From the NCBI RefSeq assembly GCF_003918875.1, contig NW_025766048.1, positions 744,001 to 808,000 on the forward strand: 64,000 nt of DNA. The letters are read 5' to 3'. Made by a program: the position numbers and the translations under genes. The first letter of the stretch is position 1, and each line of letters opens with the position of its first letter. Source of the stretch: Haliotis rubra. Its lineage: Eukaryota. Below, piece after piece: positions 19,225 to 62,010 of the stretch. A model generated the notes under the pieces. That model ran no database searches and had not been told where the DNA came from. It saw nothing but the letters and a program-made list of their open reading frames with translations.

Positions 19225-22200
19225 TTATGGTCTAAAGGGGACGGGCACGCTTGTCATCGAAGTGACTGTTGACTCTAATGAAGCCTTTTCCTGTTAAACA
19301 AAAAAAGTAATACACCATTCCGGTATCCGTTATTGTCAATATCGGCTGTCATCATCATCATCATCATCATCATCATCGTCTAAGAAAAAATAAGTATTCA
19401 AGTGACGAAAGAATCATGGTATGCTGGTGTTATTGTTTGATAAATTAAAGGGCCACTGATCCAGAGCGATTAATGTTTCCAGCCAACAGTCTAATTACGA
19501 AACCTAGCTGCAAACTGGTCAGCCTCTGCTCCCTCGACCGTGACGGACACGGGGACTGGGCTACTGTCCACCTTGGCAGAATTTCTTCAACCTAATTGGT
19601 GGGACATTAGGAAGGGTGGATGCCCATCAGATGCCCTTATTTGAAAATATCCCCGCTACTTTTTGTCTGATTGTAATAAAGTATCCCAGCAGTGTAGGCT
19701 TTATCAGATTTTCAGATGTTTGGATGGTATAGTGACTGATCCAATTTGATCCTATTTCTGTGTTTTTTACCTCGATATTTAATCATGTAAAAATATGATG
19801 TCTATTACCTATGCTATGATATCAAAAACACACATTTGATATATTTGAATCCATAAACTAAACAACCCCACTTTGCCATTGCTAAAAACTCTGACATTTT
19901 ACTTAGGTACATAGGTATATACAGTTTTTAACTAAGTACACAGCAAATGCTTACATATGTTTCTTATGTAACAATGAAGTTCCGTTCGTATCCTCAAATC
20001 AGTGTCGGCCCATAAGATATTTTTCAGGCAATCAAACTTGCATGCAATACAGTGATTACTACACTCTAGCTGTAACCCTTGTTTGGTGGTAAACCTACAC
20101 ATGTTATTTGTCATCATTGACTTGATGGTCAGTTAATGAATTTACAACAGGTATAATTAGTAATAACACCGCTCAGATTACCCGACAAAGGTTCCCATTT
20201 GGCATTTCTTGTGTCTGGAGTAAATACTCAACATGATAAATTGAGGTCTTAGGTGGCAAATGTATGATATCTTATGTAATATGTGCATGGACGTGCAGCA
20301 AGAGGAATTATCAGCTGAGTTACAAAACAAACAGCGATCAAAGGATTAACCGGTAACACGCTGATTGTTTAATTGCTTTTATCCTGCACAGTGGATTTGT
20401 CAAAAGGTAGAGTTTATGTATATAGATTTACTAATCTATACTGAATACATCCTGTCGTAAAGTCTCTTTGTAAAAACAAACGCCCTTCCTTCTAAGGATT
20501 AACCGCCAATACATTCATTGATTGGCTAACTAAATTGCTCCTTTAACTTAATCTCTCCATGAAAGTGTAAGTTTGCAGCACGGAAATAATCACTATACAC
20601 TCACCAATTTACCTCACCTACTTAATCCTTATCCATACTCCTTTTATCAGGCAACATCCATGAGCTTAATGCCGATGGTAATTCACTGTGTTGTTAATAC
20701 ACGTTCAGCCAATAAACAGGAGAGCCGAGATACCGGATGCCGGTTTAGAGAGTGTTAAGTACTGTTCAAACAGTCAAATAGGCGACCTTTGTTGTGCCGA
20801 AATACGGAATACACTGACGCCGGCTTAGAGGGCGTCAATCTCATAAATTAACTAGCTTCTGTCGGGACCAAATTCTAGTGCCGATATTGAGAGCATACCG
20901 GATTGGAGGGCTGCCGAGAGCTTCCACTGTATTCTTGTGAGAGTAATAGCACCTGTTTATGCTTCAGAGTTCACTTTTCAACTTGCTCACATCTAATAGG
21001 CCAAAACAGATAGTTCCGAGTACAGGCTATACTGCGCGATTGGTCTGGTTTGTGTGACGATTCTCAGCTGTGTTTTGGTGAAGCGTTATACTTGTACTAA
21101 CCCATTCTCTTCCCACAGAGGTTACTTGTCATATCTTCCTACGAACCTCTGTTCTAATACGGCCATATTTCCCGGTTCTCGTAAAATCCCCTAGCGGCAA
21201 AAGATCGCAACACGAATTATCTCCCTTCTTTCTATCCAATCAGAACACGTGTTACATCGACTTAGATTAAACTTGACTAACACAAGCAAATGTGGGGCCA
21301 CAAATATCCTCCATCTGCCGGGGACTTGTGTTGATATTACACACAAGACGTTTAATGGCTAGCTTGTCCGTTGTCAACGAGGGCGATGGAGACGCCACTG
21401 ATCCGCCATAACATGACTGTCTAGAAGAAACGTTTGCGCATCGCGCAGGGGAAGAGGTTTAGTTTTCTCGAAGCATACGGAAATTACCGAGGCCTTGCGA
21501 ATGATCACTTTTGAAACAACGTCGCTGATTGCACAACTAAATCTGATTGCCTCCAATCACGAGTCTTGAACGCTCACACCATGAAAGGGCCGTATTAGAA
21601 CAGAGGTTACGTAGGAAGATATGACAGGAGTAACCTCTGTGGGAAGAGAATGGTACTAACCTTGTGTTCCTCGTTATAGAGATACACGGCGGTCGTGCCG
21701 AATCCCCAGTTGAAAACGTCGTAGTTGATGATGTAGTCACAGCCGATGTCTTGTTGGGGAGCAGGGGTGTTCCAGCGACCGTAGATCTGAGGAAGTGAGT
21801 AATGAGGGGCTTAACAACAGTTTCAACGCTATTGCAGTTGGTGCTGATTTAACAACTACCTGGTTGACATGAAGATGACAATATATGAAGTCCAAATTAG
21901 CCTGCTTTAGATTCCTTTCATTGCTGAAGTAAGAACAACCCCCCCCCCCCAATAAAATTAAAAGATTTTTAGAGGGTACATTTAAAATACCCCCAAAAAA
22001 CCCCAAAAACACACAACAAAACAACAACAAAACAACAACAACAACAAAACCAAAACCAACCCCAAACCAAAAACAAACAAAACAATCAAAACAAACCACC
22101 ACCACCCCCAAAAAACAACAACAAAAAAAGCAAAAAACAAACAAGAACCACCCCAAACCCCACACCCCACACCCCCGAACAAATAAACCAACCAAACATA

Positions 22201-25200
22201 AAATAAATCCCCCAAAACAACAACCAAAAAGAAAAATACAAAACAACCGAAAACCCCGCTCTGTATACCAGTGATCATCCATGCCGTAGCTTGACAGCGA
22301 TACTTAATTTGGACATTGATAACATGGATTCCGAGCCAGTCAATCCACATTTAATCCTATTAATATCGATATGCAGGTCTTCAGGTATGACGCTGCCGAT
22401 GATCGCACCACTGACCGTGCATTCAGCCGCCCATAGTTACCCAAATGTAAGAAAACACTCCGGTTAAAATCCTATCAGTGAGTGAGTGAGTTTAGTTTTA
22501 CGACGCTTTTTAGCAATATTCCAGCAATATCACGGCGGGGGACACCAGAAATGGACTTAACACATTGTGCCCATGTGGGGAATCGAACCCGGGTTTTCGG
22601 CGTGACGAGCGAACGCCTTAACCACTAGGCTACCCCACCGCCCCTAAAATCCTATCAATTTCAACATTCACATTGATACTTATTAAACATGGCAAAACCC
22701 AAACATTATTGATCACCTTGAAATGTAATGTTTTCGCAAAGACCAAGAGTCACCATCGTTTTTAAGAAAGAAGTACAGTGTGCTTTGTAATGATTTCGTG
22801 GCCCACGAAGAATCCACGTGGGGGATTCGAGGCAATAGGTCTCTAGTATCCCGCGCGTGTCGTGTGCAGTAATTGATGACCAGGTATTACAGGTAGTTCT
22901 ACTGTGTATCTTGGTGATTATGTGTAACACTGCTGCGGCGCAATACTACATTCATTCATTCTCTGAGTTAGAGTGTTCTTTCTGCTGCTACTTACTCTGA
23001 GTTTAGCACCCGGATGTAGGACATAGTCCCCGAATTTGTAGAGGATGTCGGGTTGGCCTTTTCTCTTTTTTCTCAAACTCCATCCTTGCAACTGCACCGA
23101 CTAGATGCCAAACAGAGTCATGTAGTTAGACAATGGTAGTGATACTTCGTGGTAAGTTCATGTCTGATTAAATGTTAACAAGCAGCCATCCAAACTGGTA
23201 TTGCCCTGAAACTCACCCTGCCCAGCAACGATCCAAATTGGTATTGCCCTGAAACTCACACTGCCTAGCAACGATCCAAACTGGTATTGCCTTGAAACTC
23301 ACCCTGCCCAGCAACGATCCAAACTGGTATTGCCTTGAAACTCAGCCTGCCAAGCAACGATCCAAACTGGTATTGCCTTGAAACTCAGCCTGCCCAGCAA
23401 CGATCCAAACTGGTATTGCCTTGAAACTCACCCTGCCCAGCAACGATCCAAACTGGTATTGCCTTGAAACTCACCCTGCCAAGCAACGATCCAAACTGGT
23501 ATTGCCTTGAAACTCAGCCTGCCCAGCAACGATCCAAACTGGTATTGCCCTGAAACTCACCCTGCCTACCAACGATCCAAACTTGTATTGCCTTGAAACT
23601 CAGCCTGCCCAGCAACGATCCAAACTGGTATTGCCTTGAAACTCAGCCTGCCCAGCAACGATCCAAACTGGTATTGCCTTGAAACTCACCCTGCCAAGCA
23701 ACGATCCAAACTGGTATTGCCTTGAAACTCACCCTGCCAAGCAACGATCCAAACTGGTATTGCCTTGAAACTCACCCTGCCAAGCAACGATCCAAACTGG
23801 TATATCCCTGAAACCCACCCTGCCCAGCAACGATCCAAACTGGTATTGCCTTGAAACTCAGCCTGCCCAGCAACGATCCAAACTGGTATTGCCTTGAAAC
23901 TCACCCTGCCAAGCAACGGTCCAAACTGGTATTGCCTTGAAACTCAGCCTGCCAAGCAACGATCCAAACTGGTATTGCCTTGAAACTCAGCCTGCCAAGC
24001 AACGATCCAAACTGGTATTGCCTTGAAACTCAGCCTGCCCTGCAACGATCCAAACTGGTATTGCCTTGAAACCCACCCTGCCCAGCAACGATCCAAACTG
24101 GTATATCCCTGAAACCCACCCTGCCCAGCAACGATCCAAACTGGTATATCCCTGAAACCCTATCTGCCCAGCAACGATCCAAACTGGTATATCCCTGAAA
24201 CTCACTCTGCCCAGCAACGACCCAAACTGGTATTGTCCTGAAACTCACCCTGCCCAGCAACGGTCCAAACTGGTATTGCCTTGAAACTCACCCTGTCCAG
24301 CAACGATCTAAACTGGTATTGCCTTGAAACTCACCCTGCAAAGCAACGATCCAAACTGGTATTGCCTTGAAACTCACCCTGCCAAGCAACGATCCAAACT
24401 GGTATATTCCTGAAACCCACCCTGCCCAGCAACGATCCAAACTGGTATATCCCTGAAACCCACCCTGGCCAGCAACGGTCCAAACTGGTATTGTCCTGAA
24501 ACTCACCCTGCCCAGCAACGATCCAAACTGGTATATCCCTGAAACTCACCCTGCCCAGCAACGATCCAAACTGGTATATCCCTGAAACTCACCCTGCCAA
24601 GCAACGATCCAAACTGGTATATCCCTGAAACTCACCCTGTCCAGCAACGATCCAAACTGGTATTGTCCTGAAACCCACCCTGCCCAGCAACGATCCAAAC
24701 TGGTATATCCCTGAAACCCACCCTGCCAAGCAACGACCCAAACTGGTATTGTCCTGAAACTCACCCTGCCCAGCAACGGTCCAAACTGGTATTGCCTTGA
24801 AACTCACCCTGCCCAGCAACGGTCCAAACTGGTATTGCCTTGAAACTCACCCTGCCCAGCAACGATCCAAACTGGTATTGCCTTGAAACTCACCCTGCCA
24901 AGCAACGATCCAAACTGGTATATCCCTGAAACCCAACCTGCCCAGGAACAATCCAAACTGGTATATCCCTGAAACCCACCCTGCCCAGCAACGATCCAAA
25001 CTGGTATATCCCTGAAACTCACCCTGTCCAGCAACGACCCAAACTGGTATTGTCCTGAAACTCACCCTGCCCTGCAACGGTCCAAACTGGTATTCCCCTC
25101 CGTGATTTAGCCAATCAACAAGTTGTTTTTAATCATTGTACTTTACTCTCTTTAGTGTTAAACCGGTTGTATAAACATGTCCGAACAATATAAGGGAAGC

Positions 25201-25390
25201 TAAAGCTATACACACAAGAGACAGTAAAATACAGTCCAACCTTTGACTTCGATGCAGTCGTGGTGTTCTCTATTGTTATGTAACTTCCGTCCAATGATAC
25301 TTCAACGAAGCTGACTGGTCCACGGGCTGACCGTGACAGTACCATTCGACCGGAAACGCAAGAGTTTTTTGTCTGCGCATGCGCTAACAT
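19225..25390 (-). CDS. Divergent lamin-tail-domain cassette 3 or stand-alone LTD gene: exons ~25390-25241 (5' boundary uncertain), 23100-22996, 21786-21661, 19290-19225
   Basis: MLAHAQTKNSCVSGRMVLSRSARGPVSFVEVSLDGSYITIENTTTASKSK | SVQLQGWSLRKKRKGQPDILYKFGDYVLHPGAKLR | IYGRWNTPAPQQDIGCDYIINYDVFNWGFGTTAVYLYNEEHK | EKASLESTVTSMTSVPVPFRP*. Internal exons are 105 and 126 nt as in cassette 1, sites are canonical, ATTAAA at ~19170-19165. Confidence 0.8.
21103..21652. mobile_element. MITE with ~65-bp TIRs inserted at the donor site of cassette 3 exon 21786-21661
   Basis: TIR CATTCTCTTCCCACAGAGGTTAC...; direct repeat GTACTAACC at 21094-21102 and 21653-21661. Confidence 0.85.
21935..22256. repeat. C/A-rich low-complexity tract
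   Basis: Degenerate CAA/CAAA/CCCCAAAA runs; source of spurious G/F/V/C-rich ORFs. Confidence 0.9.
22478..22644 (-). mobile_element. tRNA-derived SINE family A (~170 bp), representative copy
   Basis: A box TAGCCTAGTGG, B box GGTTCGATTCC, (ACTC)n tail, TSD TAAAATCCTATCA. Other copies at ~3820-3960, 5022-5180, 6720-6877, 12637-12810, 15233-15410, 18034-18201, 18890-19045, 38308-38437, 47549-47710, 48981-49141, 51103-51247, 54390-54531. Confidence 0.9.
23188..25094. repeat. 43-bp minisatellite, ~44 copies, in the first intron of LTD cassette 3
   Basis: Unit CCAAACTGGTATTGCCTTGAAACTCACCCTGCCCAGCAACGAT, head-to-tail with point variants. Confidence 0.97.
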
Positions 25391-26068
25391 TTCAACACGG
25401 ATATTACATCGGCCAACACAACCTGTCTCTTCAAATCAGTTCGTTTTTGTCTGTAAGGAAAATCAATAACACATTGGTTAGTTGTACACGAACACTGATG
25501 TTATATTAGTTGTATGCGTTCATAAAGTATATCGTTTGTAACATATGTTATATTTGCGAATACGCTTTCTCAATAAAGGCCAAATTTGAGTCGGTTAGAT
25601 CGCTGACTTTGTGTGCTGGCGAATAGATGACTGACTCTGAGAGTATGGGTTGGAATCCCAATTGCTTGGATCGATGGTCATCATTTGTTAAACGTGGAAT
25701 ACATACACGGATACACACAAAACATTTTTCATACTACTAACATCGTACCGGTCTTTGATGTGGCGACCCGTGAAGGTCCGGGTTAGAATTGGTCTTCAGT
25801 CAACCTGTGCTTGTCGAAAGGGGCAACTAACGGGATCGGGTGGTCAGGCCCGCTGACTTGGTTGACACATGTTATCGTATCCCAGTTACGTAGATCGATA
25901 CTCATGGTGCTGATCACTGGATTGTCTGGACTATTTACAGACCGCCGTCATATAGCTGGAATACTGCTGAGTCTGGCGTTAAGCAAAACAACAAACAAGC
26001 AAACAAACTTTGATGTGGCGACGACCGCTTTTGCCTCTCGGTTACATCATATCTGATTGAATACTTAC

Positions 26069-26167
26069 CTCCTACGACGTCTTTGTCATCTTCTGACATC
26101 ATTTACTGCAGGTGTTCTGACGCTGACCCCGAAGGGGTGAGTCCATTCAGGTCTAACGAGGGGACAA
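26069..26167 (-). other. Putative upstream exon of LTD cassette 3 (may encode MMSEDDKDVVG from 26102)
   Basis: Acceptor gctttcatatag and strong donor GAG|GTAAGT. The phase-1 end follows a short ATG-initiated frame. Confidence 0.35.
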
Positions 26168-26244
26168 CTATATGAAAGCAAAAATCAATACAAGATCATA
26201 ACACTGACACAAACGAATGCTACAGTCATTTTTAATTTTATGAC

Positions 26245-29058
26245 CAGAAATTGTGTCTGGTGTCCTGCGTTAAACTGAGACATTGTATCTGGTGCCCTGT
26301 GTTAAACTGAGACATTGTGTCTTGTGCCCTGTGTTAAATTGAGACATTGTATCTGGTGCCCTGTGTTAAACTGAGACATTGTATCTGGTGCCCTGTGTTA
26401 AACTGAGACATTGTGTCTTGTGCCCTGTGTTAAACAGAGACATTGTATCTGGTGCCCTGTGTTAAACTGAGACATTGTGTCTGGTGCCCTGTGTTAAACT
26501 GAGACATTGTATCTAGTTACCCTGCCTTAAACAGAAACATTGCATCTGGTGCCCTGCATTAAACTGAGATATTGTATCTGGTGCCCTGCGTTAACCTGAG
26601 ACATTGTATCTGGTGCCCTGCGTTAAAATGAGATATGGAAACTGGTGCCCTGTGTTAAACAGAGACATTGTATCTGGTAACCTGTGTTAAACTGAGACAT
26701 TGTATCTGGTGCCCTGTGTTAAACAGAAATATTGTATCTGGTGCCCTGTGTTAAACTGAGACATTGTATCTGGTGCCCTGCGTTAAACAGAGACAGTGTA
26801 TCTGGTGCCCTGTGTTATACTGAGACATTGTATCTGGTGCCCTGTGTTAAACAGAGACATTGTATCTGGTAACCTGTGTTAAACTGAGACATTGTATCTG
26901 GTGCCCTGTGTTAAACAGAAATATTGTATCTGGTGCCCTGTGTTATACTGAGACATTGTATCTGGTGCCCTGTGTTAAACTGAGACATTGTATCTGGTAA
27001 CCTGTGTTAAACAGAGACATTGTGTCTTGTGCCCTGTGTTAAACTGAGACATTGTATCTGGTGCCCTGTGTTAAACAGAGACAGTGTATCTGGTGCCCTT
27101 TGTTATACTGAGACATTGTATCTGGTGCCCTGTGTTAAACTGAGACATTGTATCTGGTAACCTGTGTTAAACAGAGACATTGTGTCTGGTGCCCTGTGTT
27201 AAACTGAGACATTGTATCTGGTGCCCTGTGTTAAACTGAGACATTGTATCTGGTAACCTGTGTTAAACAGAGACATTGTGTCTTGTGCCCTGTGTTAAAC
27301 TGAGACATTATATCTGGTGCCCTGTGTTAAACAGAGACAGTGTATCTGGTGCCCTGTGTTATACTGAGACATTGTATCTGGTGCCCTGTGTTAAACAGAG
27401 ACATTGTATCTGGTAACCTGTGTTAAACTGAGACATTGTATCTGGTGCCCTGTGTTAAACAGAAATATTGTATCTGGTGCCCTGTGTTATACTGAGACAT
27501 TGTATCTGGTGCCCTGTGTTAAACTGAGACATTGTATCTGGTAACCTGTGTTAAACAGAGACATTGTGTCTTGTGCCCTGTGTTAAACTGAGACATTGTA
27601 TCTGGTGCCCTGTGTTAAACAGAGACAGTGTATCTGGTGCCCTTTGTTAAACTGAGACATTGTATCTGGTGCCCTGTGTTAAACTGAGACATTGTATCTG
27701 GTAACCTGTGTTAAACAGAGACATTGTGTCTGGTGCCCTGTGTTAAACTGAGACATTGTATCTGGTGCCCTGTGTTAAACTGAGACATTGTATCTGGTAA
27801 CCTGTGTTAAACAGAGACATTGTGTCTTGTGCCCTGTGTTAAACTGAGACATTATATCTGGTGCCCTGTGTTAAACAGAGACAGTGTATCTGGTGCCCTG
27901 TGTTATACTGAGACATTGTATCTGGTGCCCTGTGTTAAACTGAGACATGGTATCTGGTAACCTGTGTTAAACAGAGACATTGTGTCTGGTGCCCTGTGTT
28001 AAACTGAGACATTGTATCTGGTGCCCTGTGTTATACTGAGACAGTGTATCTGGTGCCCTGTGTTAAACTGAGGCATTGTATCTGGTGCCCTGTGTTAAAC
28101 TGAGACATTGTATCTGGTAACCTGTGTTAAACAGAGACATTGTGTCTTGTTCCCTGTGTTAAATTGAGACATTGTATCTGGTGCCATGTGTTAAACAGAC
28201 ATATTGTATCTGGTGCCCTGTGTTAAACAGAGACATTGTATCTGGCGCCCTGTGTTAAACTGAGACATTGTATCTGGTGCCCTGTGTTAAACAGAGACAT
28301 TGTATCTGGTGCCCTGTGTTAAACTGAGACATTGTATCTGGTGCCCTGTGTTAAATTGAGACATTGTATCTGGTGCCCTGTGTTAAACAGAGACATTGTA
28401 TCTGGTGCCCTGTGTTAAACAGAGACATTGTATCTGGTGCCCTGTGTTAAACAGAGACATTGTATCTGGTGCCCTGTGTTAAACAGAGACATTGTATCTA
28501 GTGCCCTGTGTTAAACAGAGACATTGTATCTGGTGCCCTGCGTTAAACTGAGACATTGTATCTGGTGCCCTGTGTTAAACTGAGACATTGTATCTGGTGC
28601 CCTGTGTTAAACTGAGACATTGTATCTGGTGCCCTGTGTTAAACAGAGACATTGTATCTGGTGCCCTGTGTTAAACAGAGACATTGTATCTGGTGCCCTG
28701 TGTTAAACTGAGACATTGTATCTGGTGCCCTGTGTTAAACAGAGACATTGTATCTGGTGCCCTGTGTTAAACAGAGACATTGTATCTGGTGCCCTGTGTT
28801 AAACAGAGACATTGTATCTGATGCCCTGTGTTAAACAGAGACATTGTATCTGGTGCCCTGTGTTAAACTGAGACATTGTATCTGGTGCCCTGTGTTAAAC
28901 AGAGACATTGTGTCTTGTGCCCTGTGTTAAACAGAGACATTGTATCTGGTGCCCTGTGTTAAACTGAGACATTGTATCTGGTGCCCTGTGTTAAACAGAG
29001 ACATTGTATCTGGTGCCCTGTGTTAAACAGAGACATTGTATCTGGTGCCCTGTGTTAA
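26245..29058. repeat. 32-bp minisatellite, ~88 copies, with a 544-bp (17-monomer) higher-order repeat
   Basis: Unit TGTGTTAAACTGAGACATTGTATCTGGTGCCC. The variant AGACAGTG recurs at 26791, 27079, 27335, 27623 and 27879. Confidence 0.97.
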
Positions 29059-30845
29059 TCTGAAACACAGAGTGCCATGTACGAAGCTGATACAGTGTTA
29101 TAAATGCCCTGTGTTAAACTGAGAGGTTCTATATGGTGCCTTGTGTGAAGCCTATAACATATCCTAATTATATAATGTGTGGAGCTCATTGTTGATACCG
29201 ACAATCGTATCCTAGCTGCGCTGATCGATGATGACATCATCATGCCATTCGCTGCAGTTTCTGGTCCAGGGTCTATCACTTACAGATCACTGTTACATAG
29301 CTGGGATATTGCTGAGTGCAGCTTTAAACAACAAACAACAAACTGACCTCGCACGACATATTTAGACCTAGGCAAAGACGCTTAAGAAACTAGAGCGTGT
29401 GCCCTGCTTCCTCCATAAATCGTCTCTGTGTCAAGATAGACATAAATACAGTTCCTGAGTAATCGTGGTCATCCAAGTTTCCATGTCCTGACTTTAACTT
29501 CACTACTGAATTCTTGAAAACATATTCTAACCGATCGTCGTCAGGTTTGTGCGAGCATAGTGCATTCAAGGTTAAATTGAAAAGGGGGTGATTTAAACTC
29601 ACCTTGTCACTGCGCAGGCCTTGTGATTGTGTATAAGTTCTGATATGGCGTAAATCGTCAGCCTTAAGAGATCCCACAAAGGAATGTTCAAAGCAAACAA
29701 ACCTACATGCTTCTACCGAGGTATATGTTCACCTGAACTACATTTCAACTGATTAAACGCACCACACAGGTAACACACACTGGATCACATGCACCGAAAT
29801 ACAAAGAGACATTGTGTAGTCATGAAAAGAAATAGCATTCAAATTATAATGCACTCAATACTAATAGCAAGCATCCTATGATATAAATGAGGACATTTAT
29901 CAATTCATTGCATTAAACGACCATGCTACACTCCGTTGGAGATAGAATTGCCTCGGCGAATGACAACGCCCACAGCAGAGAATGAAGGTGAAAAGTACGG
30001 GGGTAAACCTGCTCTCTCGAACGCGAATGCTATATTTGTGCTCTATTATGCAGCATGTGTAATCACCATGACCTTCTGTCATAGGATGTGTCATACAATT
30101 GTGCATGCCAGTGGTCCTGGTTGTCATTCTAGCCCGCAATGGGCTCGGCATTTCCTGTATAGCATCTAAGGAAAAGTGCACGGGCCTAAGACACCCCCCT
30201 GTCTAACCACGTATCTATCAGTGCCTCCTTTAGTGCATATACTGACTTCAACTCGTTTCAAGTTTCGTCAAAATGTCATGCATAAATAATCGTGTGATAC
30301 CTGTTAAGTGTATGGGTAGACTGGTTCCGTCACAGTCAGTAATATCCCCACTAGAGCAAGGAATCCAGTAGATTGTCGAAACTGAGCCGAGCATTCAAGT
30401 GGGTGGAGGCCCAAGCATAAATTCAAGTTGTCGGAAAATGATGTCACGCTATCAACAAGGTCACACATTGTTATCTTATCTCTTACGCCGGACACGCATG
30501 GGGTACCAGGAAAGGGGCTTTTCTGGTTAACGCCTCACTCTGCAGAATTCCTGCTATATGGGCGGCATGTAAATATTAGAGACCAGACAATCAAGTGATC
30601 AACACAATGAGCATCGATCTACGTAACTGGGATACGATGACACGTCTTAACCAAGTCCGCGAGCCTGACCACCCGATCCCGTTAGTCGCCTAGTACGACA
30701 AGCATGGGTTGCTGAAAACCAATTCTAACCCGGATCTTCACGGGTAAGGGAAGGAATTAAACACGAGGATGCAGCGTCTTGTAAAACCTATAAAACTGGA
30801 ATAAAGTATATGTGCATTATTTGACCTTATGCCATTTTTAATGCA

Positions 30846-31283
30846 GGCCCGCTGACTTGGTTGACACATGTCATCGTATCCCAGTTACGTAGATCGATAC
30901 TCATGGTGCTGATCACTGGATTGTCTGGACTATTTACAGACCGCCGTCATATAGCTGGAATACTGCTGAGTGTGGCGTTAAACTAAACAACAAACAAGCA
31001 AACACACTGTGATGTGGCGACGACCGCTTTTGCCTCTCGGTTACATCATATCTGATTGAATACTTACCTCCTACGACGTCTTTGTCATCTTCTGACATCA
31101 TTTACCGCAGGTGTTCTGACGCTGACCCCTGCCATATGGGCGGCATGTAAATATTAGAGACCAGACAATCAAGTGATCAACACAATGAGCATCGATCTAC
31201 GTAAATGGGATACGATGACACGTCTTAACCAAGTCAGCGAGCCTGACCACCCGATCCCGTTAGTCGCCTCGTACGACAAGCAA
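30846..31283. repeat. Composite local duplication (copy of ~25847-26130 joined to copy of ~30550-30703) flanked by a 15-bp direct repeat
   Basis: GCCATTTTTAATGCA at 30831-30845 and 31284-31298. Confidence 0.85.
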
Positions 31284-32364
31284 GCCATTTTTAATGCAAA
31301 AAGATGATAAAATGAATTTTGGTGTTTTCCTTAATCACAGTTTAACTGTTGACAGGATAATATCGACATCTGTATGATTTCACACTAGGCATCGTGAAAA
31401 TTAGGATCGTGACTACCACAACGTCTTCTCAGTCCTACAAAAGACTCGAATATTTACAAACCGCCGCCATATTGCTGGAATACTACTGAATGCGACGTTA
31501 AACAATAAACAAACAGTCCGACGAAAGCTACAATCTTCACAACCACAGCTGTTTGAAGCGCCGCAATTCGCTGTGCAGAGTTGCGTCCCTTGGACAACCA
31601 TTAGAATTCTCAGCTAGTGTTACACGTTATACAACACTAAATGTTTTCCCATAGATTTCTATAGTAACGTTATATTTCATCCAGGCTGTTAACAGCTGTT
31701 CCATGTACACATGGGTGCAGTCTGGCCTTTAAACAACTATAAAAACACAAATTCCGGCTAACTTATCCGGCAAATTTTCCGAGCACATGAACCTGAACAC
31801 ATCAACCCCAGTTCCGCACCAAATGTCACCTACTGGAAAATATCTGCACACACAATAAACATAAGTGATGGTGATAAAAATGACAGCACCAAATACTTAA
31901 AATTGTGGTTAGTTTAAATTACTGGATGGATGTGTATTTTACGTAAAAATCTTACATTATTTCATCCAATCACAGCTGTCACATGTCTCTATATGCACGC
32001 ACGCACACATGCACCACCCGCGCAGTCACACAATACGCCAACATCATTTTTGTCTTTCACACAGAATCAATAAGTGTGTTTCCCCCCGAGTTAGTCTTTA
32101 TCAATATTCCAGCAACATCACATTGAAGGGCACCACAATCAGGGATAATATATTCCAACTCGACCCTTTACCGTGACGTGCGGTACCCGTGAAGATCCGG
32201 GTTAGAATTGATCTTCAGTAACCCATGCTTGTCGTAAGATGCGACTAACGGGATCGGGTGGTCAACCTCGCTGACTTGGTTGGCACATGCCATCGGTTCC
32301 CAATTGCGCAGATCGATGGTCGTGCTGTTGATCACTGTATTGTCTGGTCTAGACTCGAATATTT

Positions 32365-35857: not shown

Positions 35858-35873
35858 GTGACGTCACTTCCGG
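35858..35873 (-). promoter_or_regulatory. Overlapping ETS-CRE motif CCGGAAGTGACGTCAC; second copy at 51794-51809
   Basis: Exact 16-mer retained downstream of both cassette 1 and cassette 2. Confidence 0.3.
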
Positions 35874-38895: not shown

Positions 38896-39462
38896 CTGCA
38901 GAACGGTTCGTTCCAGCTATTATAATTTTCAGTCAAAAAAGGTGTGAGATTAAAATGAAATGAGTGAGGTGAAAATAAACAAAGGAATTAGATATACAGA
39001 TAATGTTAAATCCTTTAAATATTGACAGATGGGTTAAGTGCAAAGACGACGACATTGGTAGGAATTAATATTCAGTGGGTATGTGCAATATGCTTCAACG
39101 AGTCGAACATTTACTAGGCAAAATGGTTATATAAGACCACAAAGGGTTACATCGTGAGAGAACAATAGAGCGAGGTGTCGGCGGGATATATGATAATTGA
39201 TTTGCAAGCAGAGCAAGCTGGACTAGGCCAAACCGCATAAAGGCAACTTGGGACAGCTGCAATGTCTCAGTTTAACACAGGACACCAGATTCAATGTCTC
39301 AGTTCAACACAAAAAAACCCCAAATACACGTATTACCTTGTAACTCACTCTGCCTGGCAACGATGCAAAGGGGTATCGCCACGTAACAGTTATCGACAGC
39401 ACCTGGCTGTAGCGCTTGCGCAGACAGCTTGACTTATACTTCCGTAATAGAGACATCACTAA

Positions 39463-48786: not shown

Positions 48787-48789
48787 TAT

Positions 48790-49230
48790 CATGCAGTCGT
48801 TAACAGTCCCAAAGGTTCGATCAGTTTCATTCGGCGAGCGACCATTCCGACATGCAGCTCCATATCTATGGAATTCGTTCAACATAAACCTTTCTGATTC
48901 TCTCGCAAGTTTCAAATCTCCCTTACCAACTCTTCAAACCATCAGGTATATTTATTGTATATTATCCTCTGATTTTATTGGGGGCGGTGGGGTAGCCTAA
49001 TGGTTAAAGCGACCGCTCGACATGCTGAAGACCCGGGTTCGATTCCCCACATGGGTGCAATGTGTGAAGCCCATTTCTGATCTCCCCCGCCGTGATATTG
49101 CTGGAATATTGCTAAAAGCGGCGTCAAACCATACTCACTCACTCTGATTTTATTGTAGCGCCATGGGCATGCCCAATAGCGTGGATGCAAGCTCATTATA
49201 AATGTACATTATTATTATTGTTATTTATCA
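48790..49230 (+). mobile_element. Second L2-like 3' fragment, interrupted by a tRNA-SINE
   Basis: LTVPKVRSVSFGERPFRHAAPYLWNS and an ATT-rich tail. SINE at 48981-49141 is flanked by TSD CTCTGATTTTATTG. Confidence 0.7.
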
Positions 49231-51935
49231 TTAAAGGAGAATCCTCCATTTCTGGACAGACTCCTTGGAGAAATCAGACGGGCGGAAATGCAGAAAACAC
49301 AACGTACCAAAGACACAGGATAAATGAATAGTTTCCAAGTCAGGAGATCATTTGATGTAAGTGTTTAAGCATGTTATACGTGGAAAACCACCTCAGCGAT
49401 TCTATTCAAGATATTCTCTGCTCAGCATGGATTAGAATCTGAAGTTATCTGAACACGGCATTTCTACTCGCCATCAGCACAATAGCCTCACGTCCTGTGG
49501 GTGTTCCGACAACATTCAAACAGGCAACATTTCAATGATTACTTTGCGCTTGGGCAGATATTAGGACCGGAGTTTTCAAGTGGACAGATATTAAAAGGGG
49601 TTATGCACATACTGCAAGTTTTCTGAACATCATTCATCTGTAGCTGGCCTTTTTGAAACAGATAAAATAGAAATCTGTAGGGGTTGCATTTAAATTGAGT
49701 TTAGCTATCCTTATCCAGCGAGACAGTTTTAAACGTTGTGCGGGATTTTGCGGCATGTTGGTTAATGGTGGTTGAGTGAAACATTCTAAATACGAATACT
49801 TGGAATTCATGAAATAAACATGCTGTATGGCACCAACGCAGGTGTTGGCGACGTTGACTAGCACAACTTCTTTTCTGTCCGACGACAGACTGGGATATTT
49901 ACAGACCCCCTACATATACAGCCTGTCTGATTTCATTTGAGACCGAGTAATTGCTCACTAACACAAAATGTAATAATTGCAACCAAACCAAATTTTGCAG
50001 TCACTTGAAATCGACAGAGCAACTCTGATTATTTGTCTCATAACTTTGGACACCCGAATAAAAAAAGTTGTTCAACAAGGGTCATTATTTTGTTGTCTTA
50101 TTACGCTATATTTTACGAGGGGTGATCACTTGCTGGTAGAACAGCCGTTTATCAAAAATGGCGTGTGTAGTGAAATTTCGATTTCACACGTGTAACTCGC
50201 ACACCTGGCTGTTCTACCAGAAAGTGCCAAGCCCCTCCACCCCACCCCACCAAACACACACACACACAAAATCATTTTGTCTTGCACTCAGAATCAATAT
50301 TCCAGCAACATCGCGTTGAAGGACACCGCAATTAAAGATTCGAACCCGACCCGTCGCCCTGACGTGCGAACGCTTCAATCACTATGTTACCCAACTGTCT
50401 CTTCAAACACTGTCACAAGCCAATCGAGTTATTCCCCTTTATCTCAAATCCATGAAACTCAGGCTTCATATTGTACACTACACTTGTTTGTGTTGTATGG
50501 GAGATAATGTGCGCTTCTCCCATAAACTCTCTTAATTCAATACGAATCCGAGTGCAATATCGACTGACATTATCAGATAATGCACATCGTCAACAAACTG
50601 AAACAATAAACATTATGTAATGTGTCATTGTGAGAAAATGCCAACGTCGCTTTGTCGCATGAAACATTATTTCAGGCTATTGAAGTGATGAGAAATGATG
50701 TTGAACGTTGTTGAAGTTGAAGATTACTGCAAGATCACTGCAAGATCACTAGGCACGTGCATATTCCTCTTTATCTTCAAGTCGTCTGCCGCAGTTTATC
50801 ATAGTTTGTTTGTTTTTTTAATGCCACACTCCAATATTCCAGCTGTATGGCGACGGTCTGTAAACTTACGAACCTGGGCCAAACAATCCAGTGATCAACA
50901 GCAGAGTATCGATCTACGCAACTGGGATACGATGGCACGTGTCAACCAAGTCAGCGAGCCAGCCTGACCATCGATCTCGTTAGTATCGTTTTACGACACG
51001 CATGTGTTGCTCATAGCCACGGTCAGACACGGCTGACTGACTCTGATCGATCAGCTTTAGCGTCATCCCCATTATGCTCAATGCCAGACAACCATCTATA
51101 GTCAGTGAGTTTAGTTGTACGCCGCTTTTAGCAATATTCCTGCAATATCACGGCGGGGGACACCAGAATTGGGTTTCACACATTGTACCAATGTGGGGAA
51201 TCGAACCCGGGTCTTCGGTGTGACGATCGAACGCTTTAACCACTAGACCATGGAGGCCTCCATATCCTCAAGGTCATGTGTGGTGCTTACAATAACTTAT
51301 CTGACGACAAATAACGACCCTGGGCCTAAACCCGTACGCAGATTCTGATACACAAGTGACCTAACTGCGTATATGAAGAACAGCAGGGCCTGTTTGCATC
51401 TTACTGTATGTCGTTTAATAAAAGACGTATTCGTAAATCATTTTTTTAATTCTTTATTTCAAAAAGGTCATACATTTATTATATGAGACCCTAAAATATA
51501 GAGCACCATGTGGCTACGTACAGTTTAGAAAACATAGAATTGTAACAATATGAAAATATCTACTAGTTCAGAAAGCGAAGCAGGTAGTGCGTCATGAAAA
51601 CATATCAAACACTTATTGTTTGTCATGACTCAAAACGAGACCAAACACGCGTGCATTGACATAACAATACTTTTTGTGCCTATATTATCGCTATATAAAT
51701 ATGTTTTGCTGTTCCATTATTAGACGGATTGATCATTGTGTGTTGCGTCATCAATAGGGCCGAGTAATGATGTGTACAGCACCATGTGACGTTGTGACGT
51801 CACTTCCGGTTAACAGATCACTCTCGTCCGTACTGACAATGCAAACCACAAAGGCACCTTAACAATTAACAAATGGAATTCATAACCAGACTCTCAACTA
51901 CATATTTAACAATTATTATGATTTAATCCAGCATG

Positions 51936-52855
51936 CAAAAGACAACCCATTCTATCGACACGATGTCGAATTTCCGACCGTCCAATGTTCCCATAATCCC
52001 TTACGAAAGTATCCCGTTAACCAATGAGAGGGTCGCGTTTGGTTACATCAACGTTTTGTACAAAGAAAGACTTATTGGTAAGGCGTGCAGTTCAACATTT
52101 CCGTCGTACGAATTATGCTTGTCAAATTGATGGAAAATTCAGCTGCCGATAAAAGATCCGAAACTCACATTGTCCACGGGCACCTGTGACAGAAGCGGGT
52201 ATTTCGCTGGTTCACTTTAACCCTGTTCTGCCGATATCGTAACCACTTTACCAGCGACCTTCACCTTTAAAAATCAGGGTCATAATAACCTTGACCTTTA
52301 AACCCTGTGTCAATAAGATTCACAACCTCCAGAATGCTCTCAGCACAAAGGACATACATGGGACACCCACTCACATCAACATTATTTACAAAACAGTAAT
52401 CACAAACAAATACTAGATCTCCACTGCCGTTGGGTAATGCATGTACTAGTATGGAATTTATATATAGTTTTGTTAAGTGTATTTCACTCTGCAGGGCAAG
52501 ACTTTGATTTCAGCATAGAAGCATGATTGATTACAGTCTGACCATTCCGGTTTTCATACCTGACCACGAGCATTAAGAACATCAGAACCGACGAATGTTT
52601 TCATTCCAGTTTCTCCCACCGTTTTCAGAATCAGACATAATACTCGTTGAGCAACTGAACCAAAAATGGCTAATAAAAAATATATATTTCTGGACAACTT
52701 TCTAAGAGTGAACTAAACACTAAAGACTAAACACTGTTGTAAGACTGGCCTTTGGCAAGGAGCCCTATAAAGCCAATTAAAAGTGGAACTGAAATGTTAT
52801 GTATATTGACAGAGCAGATGTTCTAGTACTGTCTAGAACTGGTCGGCGTTCTTTG
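51936..52855. mobile_element. ~920-bp segment just downstream of the cassette 1 stop codon, absent from cassette 2
   Basis: Cassette 2 reads GCATG|TTGCGCG contiguously (~35990). Cassette 1 has CAAA...TTTG-bounded sequence at this junction. Confidence 0.55.
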
Positions 52856-52880
52856 TTGCGCGCTCAGTGTAGTTGGTCGT

Positions 52881-55013
52881 TTACTTCAGTCCGGAGATTG
52901 TTGATTTCAGAGAAGCCTTCTCCTGTTGATGAAAAGAAAGCAAAACCGTTATATGCTGTGATGATATGTCACAGTTCCCAGAAACATTGTTCCTATCTGG
53001 AAGAGTTAACTCCCCTAGTGCCCTGTAAATAGGTCCTGTTAACGTTGTGTTTCTACAGTAGTATGATTTGTTCAAATATTGAAGACATCAGCATGATAAT
53101 ATCAATAACCAAATTTTGCTGATAGCCAATACCAATTTAAATGACTCTAAACACCCGAATTTTCACGATTTCACAATCATCAATTGGAAACCACGAGCAG
53201 ATCCTGGCACACCAATGGGACGTAACTGTCTACACATGTTTCGAACAACGTCGCCTGCCTAAGGCGACGCCAACACGCCAAGGTCCTAAAGACTTTCCCC
53301 GATCGCAGACACCCATCGATTTATCCCCATTACAACCATAACATATCACGCCATCATACTAACGTTGTTGCCTTCGTCAAGGAGAATGGTGGTGCCGGAG
53401 CCGCCTCCCCAGGAGAAACATTCTTTGTTGATGATGTAGTCGCAGGGGATTTTGTCGCCGGGGCCTGGGGGGTTGCCAGCAGCATAGATCTAAGGGAGAT
53501 AATAAATAGATTAAAGCACAAGGTAGAGAAAGGGACCGTACGGAATGACGTTGACTGGCGACTAGCCAAAAGTGCAAACCTTCAATTTTGAGGGTCGTAT
53601 TTTGTTCAGAAACATTTTGGTTGTTTGTTTCACATTAAATATCTTATTCGTGGGCGCAAAGCCACAAACGTGAGAAAGCAATTATTTCAGAAAAAAGCAT
53701 TTCGAGTCATTTAGCATGTGCCACTTGCATAAGATAAGGAAACTATTTCTGAAAGAAGAGGTGGTCCGATATTGGGACAGCATGGACCACGACTTTCTAA
53801 CTTCTTAGATCAGTAGTATGCCCCGCCGCATTGAAGCCTGCATTGCTGCCCATGGTGACTTGACAAAAATACTAACTGTTCACCTGTCTTTGAATCTGGA
53901 GTTATGTTCTGCTAATATTCACATTTAATACGAGTGAAAAAATTAAAAAAATACAATCTTTAAATTCTCAAACATTTCTGGTTGTATATCTATGGAACTC
54001 CACCACTTAACAACAATTTCTCGTTTCTATCGTTTAAAGCCACCATCAAACATGGTAGCCTGTCTCACAGTCCCTGTACCATATTATTTTCCTTACTGCC
54101 AGGCCCTCCCTGCAATACTAAAGCCGTAAATAAAGCAAGTCTAGATTCCCTCACTAGTCTAGTCTAGATCTCACTGGGGCTCCTACCATGATCCGCTAGT
54201 TCTGAATATCCTGGTTCAAATCCAAATGACTCACCCTCAGCTTGTTGCCCTGCTTCAGAACGGTGTTGCCGAAGGTGAAGACGGCGTCAGCCTTGCCGGG
54301 AATGCTCCTTTTGAGCGTCCATCCGGACAGATCCTGATTCTGAAAGTCAAACAGAGGGACACCTTTACCTAAGGTTTCATGGTTACATGAGCGGTGGGGG
54401 TAGCCTAGTGGTTAAAATGTTCGCTCGTCTTGCCGGTTCGATTCCCCACATGGGTACAATGTGTGAAGCCATTTCTGGTGTCCCCCGCCGTGGAATATTG
54501 CTAAAAGCGGCCTAAAACTAAACTCACTCACACTTACATGACAACATGAAGAGCATATGGCAACTGGTTCAAACAGTTTTAATTCATACTGTGGTTGTTT
54601 AAAGCGACCTCAGCACGAAGGTGTTCATAGCTCTCATACCTTAACAAAGACTTACGGCAGTCGTAACACTAAGGTTGATGGTATACGCTAGCATACTAGT
54701 ATATGTATTTGAGTGCTCATTTGATCATATTCTGGGAAAACTGTTATCATTTTCACGAAAATATGTAATTTCGTATCAGCTCATGCTTCTGTATTTATTT
54801 TCAATGCGTTTCCAAGGTGACAAGTACAGGGGCACGTAAACATGACGTTTGTTAGTTTAAAAACATTTTCCCATTTTCTTACCTTTCCCTTTGATCCAGA
54901 GGTGGTGTTCTCAATCATGATGTAACTTCCGTCAATAGATGCCTCGACGAAGGCGATTGGTCCACGGGACGACCTTGACTGGGTCATTCTACCGGAAGCC
55001 TCGCTGTTCATGC
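52881..55013 (-). CDS. IF lamin-tail-domain cassette 1: exons 55013-54883, 54339-54235, 53489-53364, 52922-52881
   Basis: SMNSEASGRMTQSRSSRGPIAFVEASIDGSYIMIENTTSGSKGK | NQDLSGWTLKRSIPGKADAVFTFGNTVLKQGNKLR | IYAAGNPPGPGDKIPCDYIINKECFSWGGGSGTTILLDEGNN | EKASLKSTISGLK*. LTD motifs (IEN, LSGW.L, F.F, WG.G). The phase-1 acceptor matches the 58591 donor. No CaaX. Confidence 0.88.
53700..53880 (+). mobile_element. Tc1-family transposase C-terminal remnant in cassette 1 intron
   Basis: WDSMDHDFL...SSMPRRIEACIAAHGDLTKY*. Confidence 0.7.
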
Positions 55014-58000
55014 CTGCAGAACGGTTTGTTCCAGCTATTATAGTTATCAATCAAAAAGGTGTGAGATGAATATGAAAAGGGTGAGGTGAAAAGAAATAAA
55101 GGAATTAAATATACAGATAATGTTAAATCCTTTAGATATTGACAGATGGGTTAAGTGCAAACACGACTACATTGACAGAAATGTTAAGTGGTTAACATTC
55201 AATTGGTATGTGCAATATGCTTCAACGAGTAGAACATTTGCTATACAAATTGGTTATATAAGAACACAAAGGGTTACATTGTGAGAGAACAATGGGGGGA
55301 GGTGTCGGCGGGATATATGATTATTGATTTTCAAGCAGAGCAAACTAGACTAGGCCAGGCCACATAACGGCAACCTGGGACAGCTAGTCACGTGACCTGA
55401 CTGTCTCATTTACGTCACCTGTCCGGTAAAGCTTGTGTGGGCATGATCGGCACGAGTGTGGCCTCATTCACACCATTTAAAGCAGATAAGAGTAAACATG
55501 CAGAATTTCTCAATGACTGATGATGGGTGGGGGCAAATATTGAAACAATCAGGGATAGGCGACCGTTAGAAAAGCAAAGGGAGAGAACTTGTGGTAAGCT
55601 GGTTTCGGATTATTAAGGGTTATCATTTTTATAATACATCTGGATGTTAATCCTCAATTTTGGGTACCAAATTACCTTAACACACAGAGGAGCCTATAGA
55701 TTTACCTCATTGTAATATTTACTGGTCGTATACAGTAGAATATCAAGAGATTAAACGTAAAGGGTCAACTGTTTTAAAACGATATTTTCAGTTGAGTGAG
55801 CATGAAAGGATTGTGCAGTTGTTCCCATGGGCAGAAGTGTCTACGCTTCGGTGAACATGATTTACATACGATGTGCTATGACTCATAAATACAGCCCTTT
55901 CAGAAGATGCAAATCATTTAATACTTGTTAACAGAGGACCTATTCAACATGCAAGTTAGATCCAACCTCATTCTAAAAGACTTGCTGTTGTGGAAAAAGT
56001 TATGCATTAAAGTGCGCAAAGGCATTTGTGATCACATAAATGGCAACCGGTAGCAAGCAACTCTCTTTTGAAAACTATAATAAAACGGTGGGGACATAAC
56101 AATGATATCTAATTTCCCTATATACCACGCGGCAATATAAAATAGAATTCCACGCAGCTAACTCTCCAATTCACGAGCCGTAGTTTCGTAGTTCAATTTG
56201 TTCACAGCCCCCAGTCACACAAAGTCACCACAATTTTTTATTTAGCATGAAGGGCAAATACATGTAGATCCTGCTGTGAATAGCACATTGTTGAAATAGT
56301 TTCAAACAATCGGGACCGCCCCTGTTTGCTATGACAGTGACAGAGCGAACTTGTTTGTACAAGACGCCTCGCGCAGAGGGTTGAAAGGTCACCAACTCAA
56401 AGTTGCAAATCAGGTATTACTGCAAGCCTCGCTTTGGAAGGAAAGCCTCTGTTTGAACTTTAGTTCATGGATTGAGGTTTCGCCTGATTGGCTGAGCTAG
56501 ATGACTCACTGCCTCAGGTCTGCGTTCCGTCAGTGTTACAGTCCCACATAATCATTCAATTTCACTGCGTTAATGTTTTGTATGTTAGTCTGTATGGTGT
56601 CCTGAGTGTTTTGTAAGGCTTACATTTCTAGTTTAAAATCCTACTGTAAATTCCCCTTTGAACAAACCTACGTTTCTGACATTATTGCCTAGTAAATTAC
56701 ATAGTTTCACATTTTTTTTATAACTTCTATAACATATTTAAAAGTTTCGAACATATAAATGTCAGACATACACTTCCATGTTTTCCAGAAAGTAAATTAC
56801 GTACTTCATATGATTAAAAATTATTTCTACGAATATTAATTTCAACTAGCAGACCTACGTGAAATAGCATAAGGCACACGAATTGCTCTGAAAAGTATTT
56901 GAATGGACTCCTTAAGCTAGCAATTTATGAAGTAGTATTCATCGACAAGAACCTGAAAAGTATTGCTATAGGAAAGTCACAGCCACATCAAGCGAGTGAG
57001 AAACAAATCAATATATTTTTTCACGCAACTACAAAACGGGGTGATCAATCACAACAGATGCAACAGAAAAAGGGTTCAAAGACACGGCCGAAAACAAAAC
57101 TTTCACAACTGCATTTACCATTGCACTCATGACCTAAAAAATTATTGACTTTGTTTCAATTTGGGAACGGTGCATTTTTACGACTTACGTAATTCAACAT
57201 TACATACACGAATTGTTAGAAATATACATACTTTCAGATTTTGTCGCTGAAATAGAAACTAGATTCATATTCATGAACATTTTAGTCGTTACGGCAGGAT
57301 TGTGAATAATTAATATTTGTATAATATCTTTCTATGCACAAATATACTATTGGCTGTGAATATATACCATTGTAGTGATATGGGTTTATATACCTTCACC
57401 ATATATATGCATATATCTTGTTTGTGGTTATATATTATGTATATGTGTCTTAAAGGAAGATCAAGATGAATTAACATTCAACATTTTATTCGTGTGTAAT
57501 GAAAAAAACGTGACAATTCACTATATCATGATCGAAAATAGTGCTAAAATACAAAGAGTAGAATATAGGATATATTTACTTTATCACATTGATGTACACA
57601 ACCTACTTAGATCGTACGTATAGCACCGGCCTTAGAAACAAAAAGGAAATTGCATGAAACATTCATCTTCTTTGCTTTGTTACATGTGGACACGTGATTG
57701 GTCGAGTTGCATGCTGCTTGAAATTCTTTTGTGACATGGCTTGTGATTGGTCAAAATCATGCGGAGAATGGATAAGAACATGCTTGTCGTGGTAAAACAA
57801 AGGAACAGTGCGTAGTATTGCCATATGTTTGGATTCGTATATACAGGCTCAGTTTAAACTTATACGGGCTCGTAACAAACGGAACGAAATAATTTTCCAA
57901 TTTCGTCTGAGTTTTTTGTCACGAACATGGTGAAAATGCAGCCACGGCTGCGGAAGAGCGAATCACATTTATAACATGATCTCCGTGGCGATCGCCAACA

Positions 58001-58579
58001 TATGCTACATATTTACACTGTCAAGGACACGTGATAGGAAGGGAGATAACCACGTTCTTCGTGCGAAGAATTGAAGGTAAGGAAGGGAGGGTGCAAGGAT
58101 TACCTCCCCTGGGTGTAAGTGAACGCGACGTTGGGTCAAAGGTGTTAGTGTCCACACGACAGATTTGACAAAACAAAGAAAATGTTAGTGACATACACAG
58201 AAATAAAGCAGTACGTGGAATCGGTCACTCTGAGGCCTCTCTTTACAAGCATATCGTGACAGCCGGGTGGAAAATTATAAACTTTATGAAAATTATGCTT
58301 CGTTGTTGTATTTACACGTTGAAATTGGACGTTAGACACTGCGTTTTTCACCCAGTGTGACGCGACTCCTATAGATACGGTTTATAGTAGAAATATTGCA
58401 ACAGTATAGGCAAAGCGTTAACTAGCCCGACCACAAAGCAAAAATATATGCCAAATGAGAGGGCCCGAAGGTGCCCGCTTTAACGTCAGAAATAAAACAT
58501 TTGAAAGTCATGCTAGAAGATGAGGGTTTGAGTCCTCCCGGGCCGACACCTCAAGGACGATCACGTGATGGCCACGTGT

Positions 58580-58706
58580 TTACTTCTTACTGCTATGTCC
58601 AACAGCCGAGCTGGAGGAGCTTGAGGTTGTGATGAATTCACTAAGTTTTTGAGCTCCAGATCCTTGCACCCCAACTGCCTGTTCAACGATCTGTTTGAGA
58701 CCAGCC
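58580..58706 (-). CDS. Alternative tailless IF ending: read-through of the donor after 58591 gives ...AVGHSSKK*
   Basis: The donor A|GTAAGA is followed in frame by AGT AAG AAG TAA (stop 58582-58580). Candidate AATAAA on the - strand at ~57490-57485. Confidence 0.55.
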
Positions 58707-61700: not shown

Positions 61701-62010
61701 CAACTGCATTCTTAATTATAAGAAAGCATCCATTATATAGTCATCATAGTGGAACAATTATAACATACTGAGAAACGTCATGCGACAATTGGTGGTTTGA
61801 GATTTGGAGGATGCGCTACTTACGGCCCTGAATTTCTTCAGATCATCATTGGCCCTGTTGAGGAGTTCACGGATCTTTTCGTTCTCATCCTCGCTGTTCC
61901 TGATTCTCAGGCGGAGGGAGCCAAGCTCGCCCTCGTACTCTCCAACCTGGGTGGTCAATTGGTTGATCTTGGAAATGTAGTCCAGCTTATGCTTCTCAAG
62001 AATGTCGATT
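58591..62010 (-). CDS. Cytoplasmic intermediate filament protein (long coil 1b type), rod and linker exons: 62010-61824, 61470-61375, 60775-60617, 60201-60076, 59295-59075, 58706-58591; head/coil 1a exon not found, probably beyond the window
   Basis: Heptad-rich exons with consistent phases and GT-AG sites. IF rod-end signature LMDAKLSLELEICCYRQLLEGEENR-type motif (IMDAK here), followed by AGLKQIVEQ. Confidence 0.93.
59543..59614. repeat. 24-bp tandem repeat, 3 copies
   Basis: TGAGGTTTTCTATATACACCGTAT x3 in an IF intron. Confidence 0.85.

Follow-up and report, generated by a model that had tools for sequence, protein, structure and literature searches.

Intermediate filament (IF) genes of gastropods reportedly give rise to proteins with long and short tails through alternative RNA processing. 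The genomic stretch considered here, a window of 64,000 nucleotides (nt) from the abalone Haliotis rubra (positions 744,001 to 808,000 of contig NW_025766048.1), contains one such gene, whose rod exons are followed on the same strand by three copies of a block encoding the lamin tail domain (LTD). These copies will be referred to as LTD1, LTD2 and LTD3 in order of increasing distance from the rod. The region is probably the product of tandem duplications of the 3' block of a single abalone IF gene, and would comprise a filament gene ending either in LTD1 or without a tail, a neutrally evolving LTD2 copy and a separate LTD3 gene. LTD3 is an expressed small gene that codes for a lamin tail only.

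The abalone gene resembles the genes for IF-A and IF-B of Helix aspersa and H. pomatia, RGP51 of Lymnaea and IF-A of Aplysia in having an orthologous rod (43-47% identity) and a lamin-like tail. The short isoforms of the gastropod proteins end at an exon boundary matching position 58591 of the abalone window, where the read-through stop codon and the block behind it are conserved. The LTD1/tailless pair is the long/short-tail pair already known from gastropod IF genes. Unlike the Helix, Lymnaea and Aplysia genes, however, the abalone gene has the tail block repeated twice more downstream, and its tailless isoform is predicted rather than annotated.

Two further systems invite comparison. Lophotrochozoan lamins acquire alternative C-termini by alternative splicing of terminal exons, and are like the abalone locus in being mollusc and annelid filament-family genes in which alternative 3' exons change the C-terminus (PMC10125929). 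The lamin switches replace short peptides behind a single tail domain, whereas in the abalone whole tail blocks have been duplicated, and their swapping is not supported. Vertebrate LMNTD1 and LMNTD2 are rod-less lamin-tail-domain proteins described as truncated members of the cilin/nematocilin lineage (bioRxiv 10.1101/2025.08.21.671432). As with LTD3, a filament-family protein has been cut down to the lamin-tail immunoglobulin (Ig) domain and has its own gene. However, LMNTD1 and LMNTD2 come from the cilin lineage via rod loss, whereas LTD3 would derive from a canonical protostome cytoplasmic IF gene, by a tandem duplication of the 3' block only, within the abalone lineage. LTD3 is also much smaller (148 amino acids, aa) and still adjoins its parent gene. 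It would thus represent an independent parallel to the LMNTD proteins and a natural system in which to study the function of a free lamin tail domain.

The filament gene and its two endings

When a 78-residue query from a rod exon was compared with 1.84 billion cluster representatives, it matched a 601-aa protein with 99% identity. The cluster of this protein includes XP_046567557 and XP_046567556, the H. rubra "retrograde protein of 51 kDa-like" isoforms X2 and X1, respectively. XP_046567556 (hereafter P0266) is coded on contig QXJH01000204.1 of assembly GCA_003918875.1, where positions in the record equal window positions plus 744,000; the fetched H. rubra filament locus and the window are 100% identical across 21 kb. 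The nearest relatives of the protein are its orthologues in H. asinina (92%), H. rufescens (84%) and Gigantopelta (55%), followed by the gastropod non-neuronal filament proteins IF-A and IF-B of Helix/Cornu, IF-A of Aplysia and RGP51 of Lymnaea.

P0266 has the features of a protostome cytoplasmic IF protein, namely an end-to-end Filament rod and a lamin-homology tail devoid of a CaaX box. The rod (residues 77-429) aligns with positions 1-313 of profile PF00038 (E = 1.3e-43; 150 bits against a cut-off of 40). The presence of 353 residues on a 313-position profile would fit the long, lamin-type coil 1b, a reading made without a heptad-by-heptad alignment. The tail matches the LTD profile over residues 489-599 (E = 5.4e-7), with a score of 30.4 bits that lies below the 34.3 cut-off, and the protein terminates in ...STISGLK.

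Exon coordinates were obtained by exact mapping of P0266, of XP_046567557 (P0001) and of the 148-aa LTD3 product (P0273), LTD2 being placed by alignment to LTD1 (Table 1). All of the rod/linker exons and all three LTD cassettes lie on the minus strand, and the first coding exon of the filament gene is found approximately 1.2 kb past the end of the window. Further rod exons were sought throughout the 64 kb by tblastn with the rod exons and with a profile of 101 full-length IF proteins, run on all 3,003 stop-to-stop peptides of at least 15 aa from both strands; none was found. Because both searches match only the six known rod/linker exons, the locus is made of one rod and three tail cassettes. 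The first-pass annotation of the window had arrived at this same anatomy, and the mapping reproduced it: the six rod/linker exons end at a phase-1 donor (A/gtaaga, the slash marking the splice site) at 58591; three same-strand cassettes follow, with their own stop codons and matching exon phases and with no rod exons between them; and reading through the donor leads in frame to a tailless ...HSSKK terminus. The mapping shows exon sizes to match as well, an exon of 105 nt being followed by one of 126 or 129 nt, all in phase 0.

LTD1 is the normal, annotated tail of the filament gene. A splice from the phase-1 rod donor to the LTD1 acceptor preserves the reading frame, and the joint between rod and LTD1 is known from the NCBI isoforms. 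The latter differ by seven residues, reflecting the use of two acceptors 21 nt apart at the start of LTD1 exon 1, one at 55034 (608-aa isoform) and one at 55013 (601-aa isoform). Poly(A) signals are present in the LTD1 3' untranslated region (UTR) at approximately 51927-51419. Following the linker exon, the filament transcript is spliced in these isoforms to LTD1 to give a long, A-type protein of 608 or 601 aa.

The tailless ending has indirect support. In a three-species alignment, the 1,126 nt that directly follow the donor are 95.9% identical to the H. asinina sequence and 90.8% identical to that of H. rufescens. The corresponding values are 93% and 87-90% in the neighbouring coding exons, 87.6% and 76.5% in the remainder of the same intron, and 84% and 74.5% in the previous intron. 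The conserved block ends at the sole AATAAA within 1.6 kb (57490), and both this signal and the SSKK stop are identical across H. rubra, H. asinina and H. rufescens. An Rfam search of the block (57465-58590) returned no family. On the protein side, the short forms represented by Helix pomatia IF-B, Lymnaea RGP51 and proteins of Patella, Lottia and Onchidium terminate at the exon boundary equivalent to 58591. The tailless isoform is supported because these short snail forms end at the same boundary and because block, stop codon and AATAAA are conserved. In the simplest reading, the conserved block would serve as 3' UTR within a composite terminal exon, and the ...HSSKK ending is probably real. 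The filament transcript would then run through the donor and be polyadenylated about 1.1 kb into the intron, yielding a tailless B-type protein of approximately 470 aa, similar to IF-B and RGP51. The conserved block after the linker exon renders this isoform open to direct testing in abalone, together with whatever decides between it and LTD1.

The two downstream tail blocks

NCBI models LTD3 as a separate gene whose 148-aa product, P0273, is coded on this contig between 25390 and 19225. RNA contigs from three runs belonging to two studies (X1, X17 and X18), which carry the species label of the runs that best match the window at the DNA level, were examined over positions 25100-26240, between a 43-bp and a 32-bp minisatellite. 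Each of the three runs contributed one spliced contig covering exactly 25241-25450, with zero cover of the flanking introns. All of these contigs join 26068 to 25449/25450 on the minus strand, skipping 618 nt with GT..AG ends. Downstream, they run on for 105-135 nt, corresponding to exon 2 (105 nt) and to 30 nt of exon 3; upstream, they go through an exon, named U2, that is preceded by a good acceptor (tcatatag), and extend 21-200 nt beyond 26167. Since the contigs join U2 and extend past 26167, LTD3 is transcribed and spliced, its first coding exon beginning at the strong acceptor 25450, with at least two non-coding exons upstream. The first-pass annotation had listed splices from 58591 to 25450, 25422 or 25383 among the junctions to look for; in the three runs, 25450 was joined to 26167-26069 instead.

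The reading frames leading into LTD3 are closed. Stop codons interrupt every frame of U2, and an upstream reading frame of 17 codons begins in it. LTD3 exon 1 opens with 60 nt of 5' UTR in which a stop codon in the LTD frame (25438-25436) is found 16 codons before the ATG at 25390. Because this stop precedes the ATG, a rod-LTD3 fusion via the used acceptor 25450 is impossible: the phase-1 rod donor spliced to 25450 would meet a stop after six codons. The LTD3 site homologous to the LTD1 acceptor (CAG 25373) lies 27 nt, and not 26 nt, before the shared GRM motif, as a result of a 1-nt indel; being shifted by 1 nt relative to the LTD1 acceptor, it is in phase 0 and thus out of frame with the rod donor. 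The only in-frame acceptors are weak sites at 25383 and 25422, both unused in the assembled transcripts. Since the stop closes the tail frame ahead of a conserved ATG, LTD3 encodes a 148-aa rod-less protein. With its own conserved ATG and non-coding 5' exons, LTD3 probably stands alone as an LTD-only gene.

P0273 scores 37.3 bits with the Pfam LTD profile PF00932 (cut-off 34.3), residues 20-131 aligning with profile positions 2-104 of 109. Its AlphaFold2 model (predicted local distance difference test, 81.8; predicted template-modelling score, 0.75) is a nine-strand sandwich. In a Foldseek comparison, the top 16 matches of this model in the PDB were all Ig domains of lamin B1, A/C or B2, the best match being 3umn_A (E = 1.7e-10; template-modelling score 0.82 by target length). 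The LTD3 product is thus predicted to adopt the lamin-tail Ig-like fold. An orthologous LTD3 exon is carried by a 1,055-nt contig (L003) from run DRR299178, obtained from another organism. Acceptor 25450 and ATG 25390 are both kept in this contig; the coding sequence is 87% identical to that of the window, and both introns are approximately 50% identical. For exon 1, the ratio of nonsynonymous to synonymous divergence (dN/dS) is 0.16, with a dS of 0.42; by this measure LTD3 is under purifying selection.

In a tail-domain tree, LTD3 groups within the clade formed by abalone LTD1 and LTD2 (support 100/98); its branch is long, at 0.94 changes per site, which leaves its exact place unsure. Searches with exon 1 and P0273, restricted to proteins 55-259 aa long having exact words in common with the query, turned up no LTD3-like protein other than H. 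rubra P0273 itself and a 65-aa fragment from the Logan contig L003. No further tail copy was present in the 10-kb flanks of the filament genes of H. rufescens, H. asinina, H. cracherodii and Gigantopelta, a reach shorter than the distance to LTD2 or LTD3; in H. rubra these blocks lie 14 and 27 kb downstream, so the flanks of the other species do not show absence. LTD3 is already a predicted RefSeq protein, and a literature search found no paper describing it. It would be the older tail-block copy, now a separate gene in which two or more non-coding 5' exons and a short upstream frame precede its own ATG, and its promoter is presumably separate from that of the filament gene.

The LTD2 duplicate takes in the whole terminal block, beginning some 350 nt ahead of exon 1 and running through the end of the 3' UTR. 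Both acceptors, all donors and the reading frame are intact, and a splice from the phase-1 rod donor would enter the block in frame. The block and its phases are as the first-pass annotation had them; the plain four-exon structure that it proposed is not, exon 3 having been multiplied. Three intact copies of this exon (37902-37774, 37179-37051 and 36587-36462) and a truncated one (37310-37221) sit in a 724-bp tandem duplication (36497-37944; 99.7% identical) that could be either real or an artefact of assembly. An origin of cassette 2 as a whole from an assembly or haplotype artefact was considered and appears unlikely, the cassette being 9-16% diverged from LTD1, with indels.

A dN/dS value of 0.94 was obtained for LTD2 versus LTD1. 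When amino-acid changes were polarised with three other abalone species, 13 fell on LTD2 and 2 on LTD1. With nucleotide changes polarised using H. asinina and H. rufescens, the LTD2 branch carries 15 nonsynonymous and 4 synonymous changes (a ratio of about 1.1, given 309 and 93 sites) versus 2 and 1 for LTD1. The LTD2 changes include GRM to DTM, R to C in SRG, and ENTT to ENNT, at residues that LTD3 shares with every abalone LTD1 tail. No database protein matching LTD2 is recorded among proteins of 81-259 aa or in the filament cluster, and LTD2 is without annotation. LTD2 evolves neutrally and is most likely a disused, decaying duplicate. Its divergence from LTD1 is about that of the introns of H. 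rubra and H. asinina; it would be a copy of the terminal block about as old as the split between these two species, which has since drifted.

Taken together, the 3' block of one abalone cytoplasmic IF gene would have been tandemly duplicated repeatedly. The locus presents an IF tail copied away from its rod at three ages: a working tail, a young drifting copy and an old, rod-less protein under selection.

Repeats abound around these blocks. LTD3 exon 1 is flanked by the two minisatellites, one of 43 bp (23181-25094; 44.5 copies) in LTD3 intron 1, with long open frames in all three phases, and one of 32 bp (26246-29067; 88 copies) upstream of U2. The upstream breakpoint of LTD2 (39254-39380) contains approximately 1.8 inverted monomers of the 32-bp repeat (91-93% identical) and 1.2 of the 43-bp repeat (82%); because monomers of both minisatellites are found there, the LTD2 duplication is tied to the repeats around LTD3. 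A 131-bp segment comprising the 3' part of U2 and its donor (26000-26130) is duplicated 5 kb upstream at 30999-31129 (97.7% identical), on the far side of the 32-bp array; the duplication leaves out the 5' part of U2. Finally, a short interspersed repeat at 25763-25996 has similar copies at 30843-30995, 50804-50984, 18612-18842 and other places. In the RNA runs its summed contig word depth goes from thousands to about 140,000, with many loose ends; with depth and loose ends so high, the repeat is evidently embedded in many transcripts.

Table 1. Features of the filament locus in window coordinates, each exon listed in the direction of transcription.
Feature	Position	Strand	Basis or remark
Rod/linker exons	62010-61824, 61470-61375, 60775-60617, 60201-60076, 59295-59075, 58706-58591	-	Exact mapping of P0266 and P0001
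Conserved block after donor	57465-58590	-	SKK, then stop; AATAAA at 57490-57485
LTD1 exons	55034 or 55013 to 54883, 54339-54235, 53489-53364, 52922-52881 (stop)	-	Annotated tail
LTD2 segment	35455-39258	-	Segmental duplicate of 51379-55385, 84-91% identical
LTD2 exons	38916 or 38895 to 38765, 38249-38145, exon 3 copies (see text), 36061-36020	-	Alignment to LTD1
U2, non-coding 5' exon of LTD3	26069-26167	-	Acceptor ...tcatatag/TTGTCC, donor GGAG/gtaagt
LTD3 gene body	25450-25241 (coding from 25390), 23100-22996, 21786-21661, 19290-19225 (stop)	-	P0273 mapping and RNA contigs

Alternative readings of the locus

Several observations weigh against the reading of the locus as a filament gene with two endings, a relic and a separate LTD3 gene. 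An LTD3-like protein (81-259 aa) is annotated in none of the other abalone genomes, and a tailless isoform in no Haliotis species. The 5' partner of U2 in the LTD3 contigs, of which 21-200 nt are present upstream of this exon, may be IF exons. At 4-7 positions the contigs do not agree with the window, identity being 98% for exon 1 and 94% for U2, and identical variants recur in all three runs, as could be expected of the other haplotype or of a near-identical paralogue. Lastly, contigs drop rare isoforms, and a minor rod-LTD3 junction (at 25383, for example) or a rod-LTD2 junction would escape.

Transcription of LTD3 might conceivably begin at the IF promoter, although this is rather unlikely. 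The rod would then be spliced past LTD1 and LTD2 into U2, where the IF frame stops to give a short-tailed IF protein, and LTD3 would be either a second frame or an untranslated, decay-prone tail. The presence of an acceptor at U2, and of further exon sequence over as much as 200 nt upstream of it, would agree with such an origin, as would the finding that the runs containing the IF gene also contain the LTD3 transcript and the fact that all parts share one strand, uninterrupted by any annotated gene. However, the NCBI pipeline kept the filament gene and LTD3 separate. Messages with a stop codon far upstream of exon junctions are degraded by nonsense-mediated decay, and a message begun at the IF promoter should suffer this fate because its stop would precede three exon junctions. 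Purifying selection on the LTD3 frame and conservation of its ATG argue instead for translation from an ordinary message. Even if LTD3 transcripts began at the filament promoter, the filament frame would still stop in U2.

A small chance is also left to readings in which the tail copies serve the parent gene by other routes. Free LTD3 could act in trans on the filaments of the parent gene, supplying a tail to the tailless B-type protein or competing with one, or else LTD2 and the weak LTD3 acceptors could provide true tails in other tissues or stages. Were LTD3 to act in trans, "tail choice" would take place between two neighbouring genes and not by splicing.

It is very improbable that the spliced RNA contigs stem from another, near-identical paralogue of LTD3 at a different genomic location, the window copy being silent. 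Such a source would account for the recurrence of the same 4-7 differences in all three runs and for the 94% identity in U2, but exon boundaries fall exactly on the consensus splice sites of the window, and the single H. rubra protein of the LTD3 kind on record is coded on this contig. Abalone genomes are highly heterozygous, and a second haplotype explains the variants; we attribute them to it.

Least probable of all is the proposal of the first-pass annotation that one rod transcript picks among four exclusive endings (none, LTD1, LTD2 or LTD3) by splicing and polyadenylation of last-exon blocks: a single rod, three phase-matched cassettes on one strand, each with a stop codon and poly(A) signals of its own, the acceptors, donors and open frame retained by LTD2, and the weak in-frame AG sites at 25383 and 25422 would all suit it, but the acceptor of LTD3 in use joins a non-coding exon with the LTD frame closed before the ATG, the LTD1-homologous acceptor is shifted, LTD2 shows neutral evolution, and NCBI has LTD3 as a separate gene and lists no rod-LTD2 or rod-LTD3 isoform. 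Neither an RNA joint between the rod donor and LTD3 in the contigs of the three runs, nor an in-frame LTD3 acceptor other than the weak sites, nor purifying selection on LTD2 was found, and the evidence does not support an array in which whole LTD cassettes are exchanged on a single rod. Of the four endings proposed, two do hold: LTD1, which is annotated, and the tailless form, which conservation makes probable.

Neighbouring genes

The annotated neighbours on the downstream side of LTD3 are a TMEM141-family gene on the plus strand (12174-15635; 111 aa) and, below 10451, an exosome RRP4-like gene on the minus strand (293 aa). Both could be used as synteny anchors for LTD3 in other abalones. 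No gene is called in H. rubra in the 10 kb corresponding to a 288-aa gene of H. cracherodii (L007:28223-29780), which belongs to no Pfam family and lies on the opposite strand, 4.5 kb downstream of the filament gene of that species.

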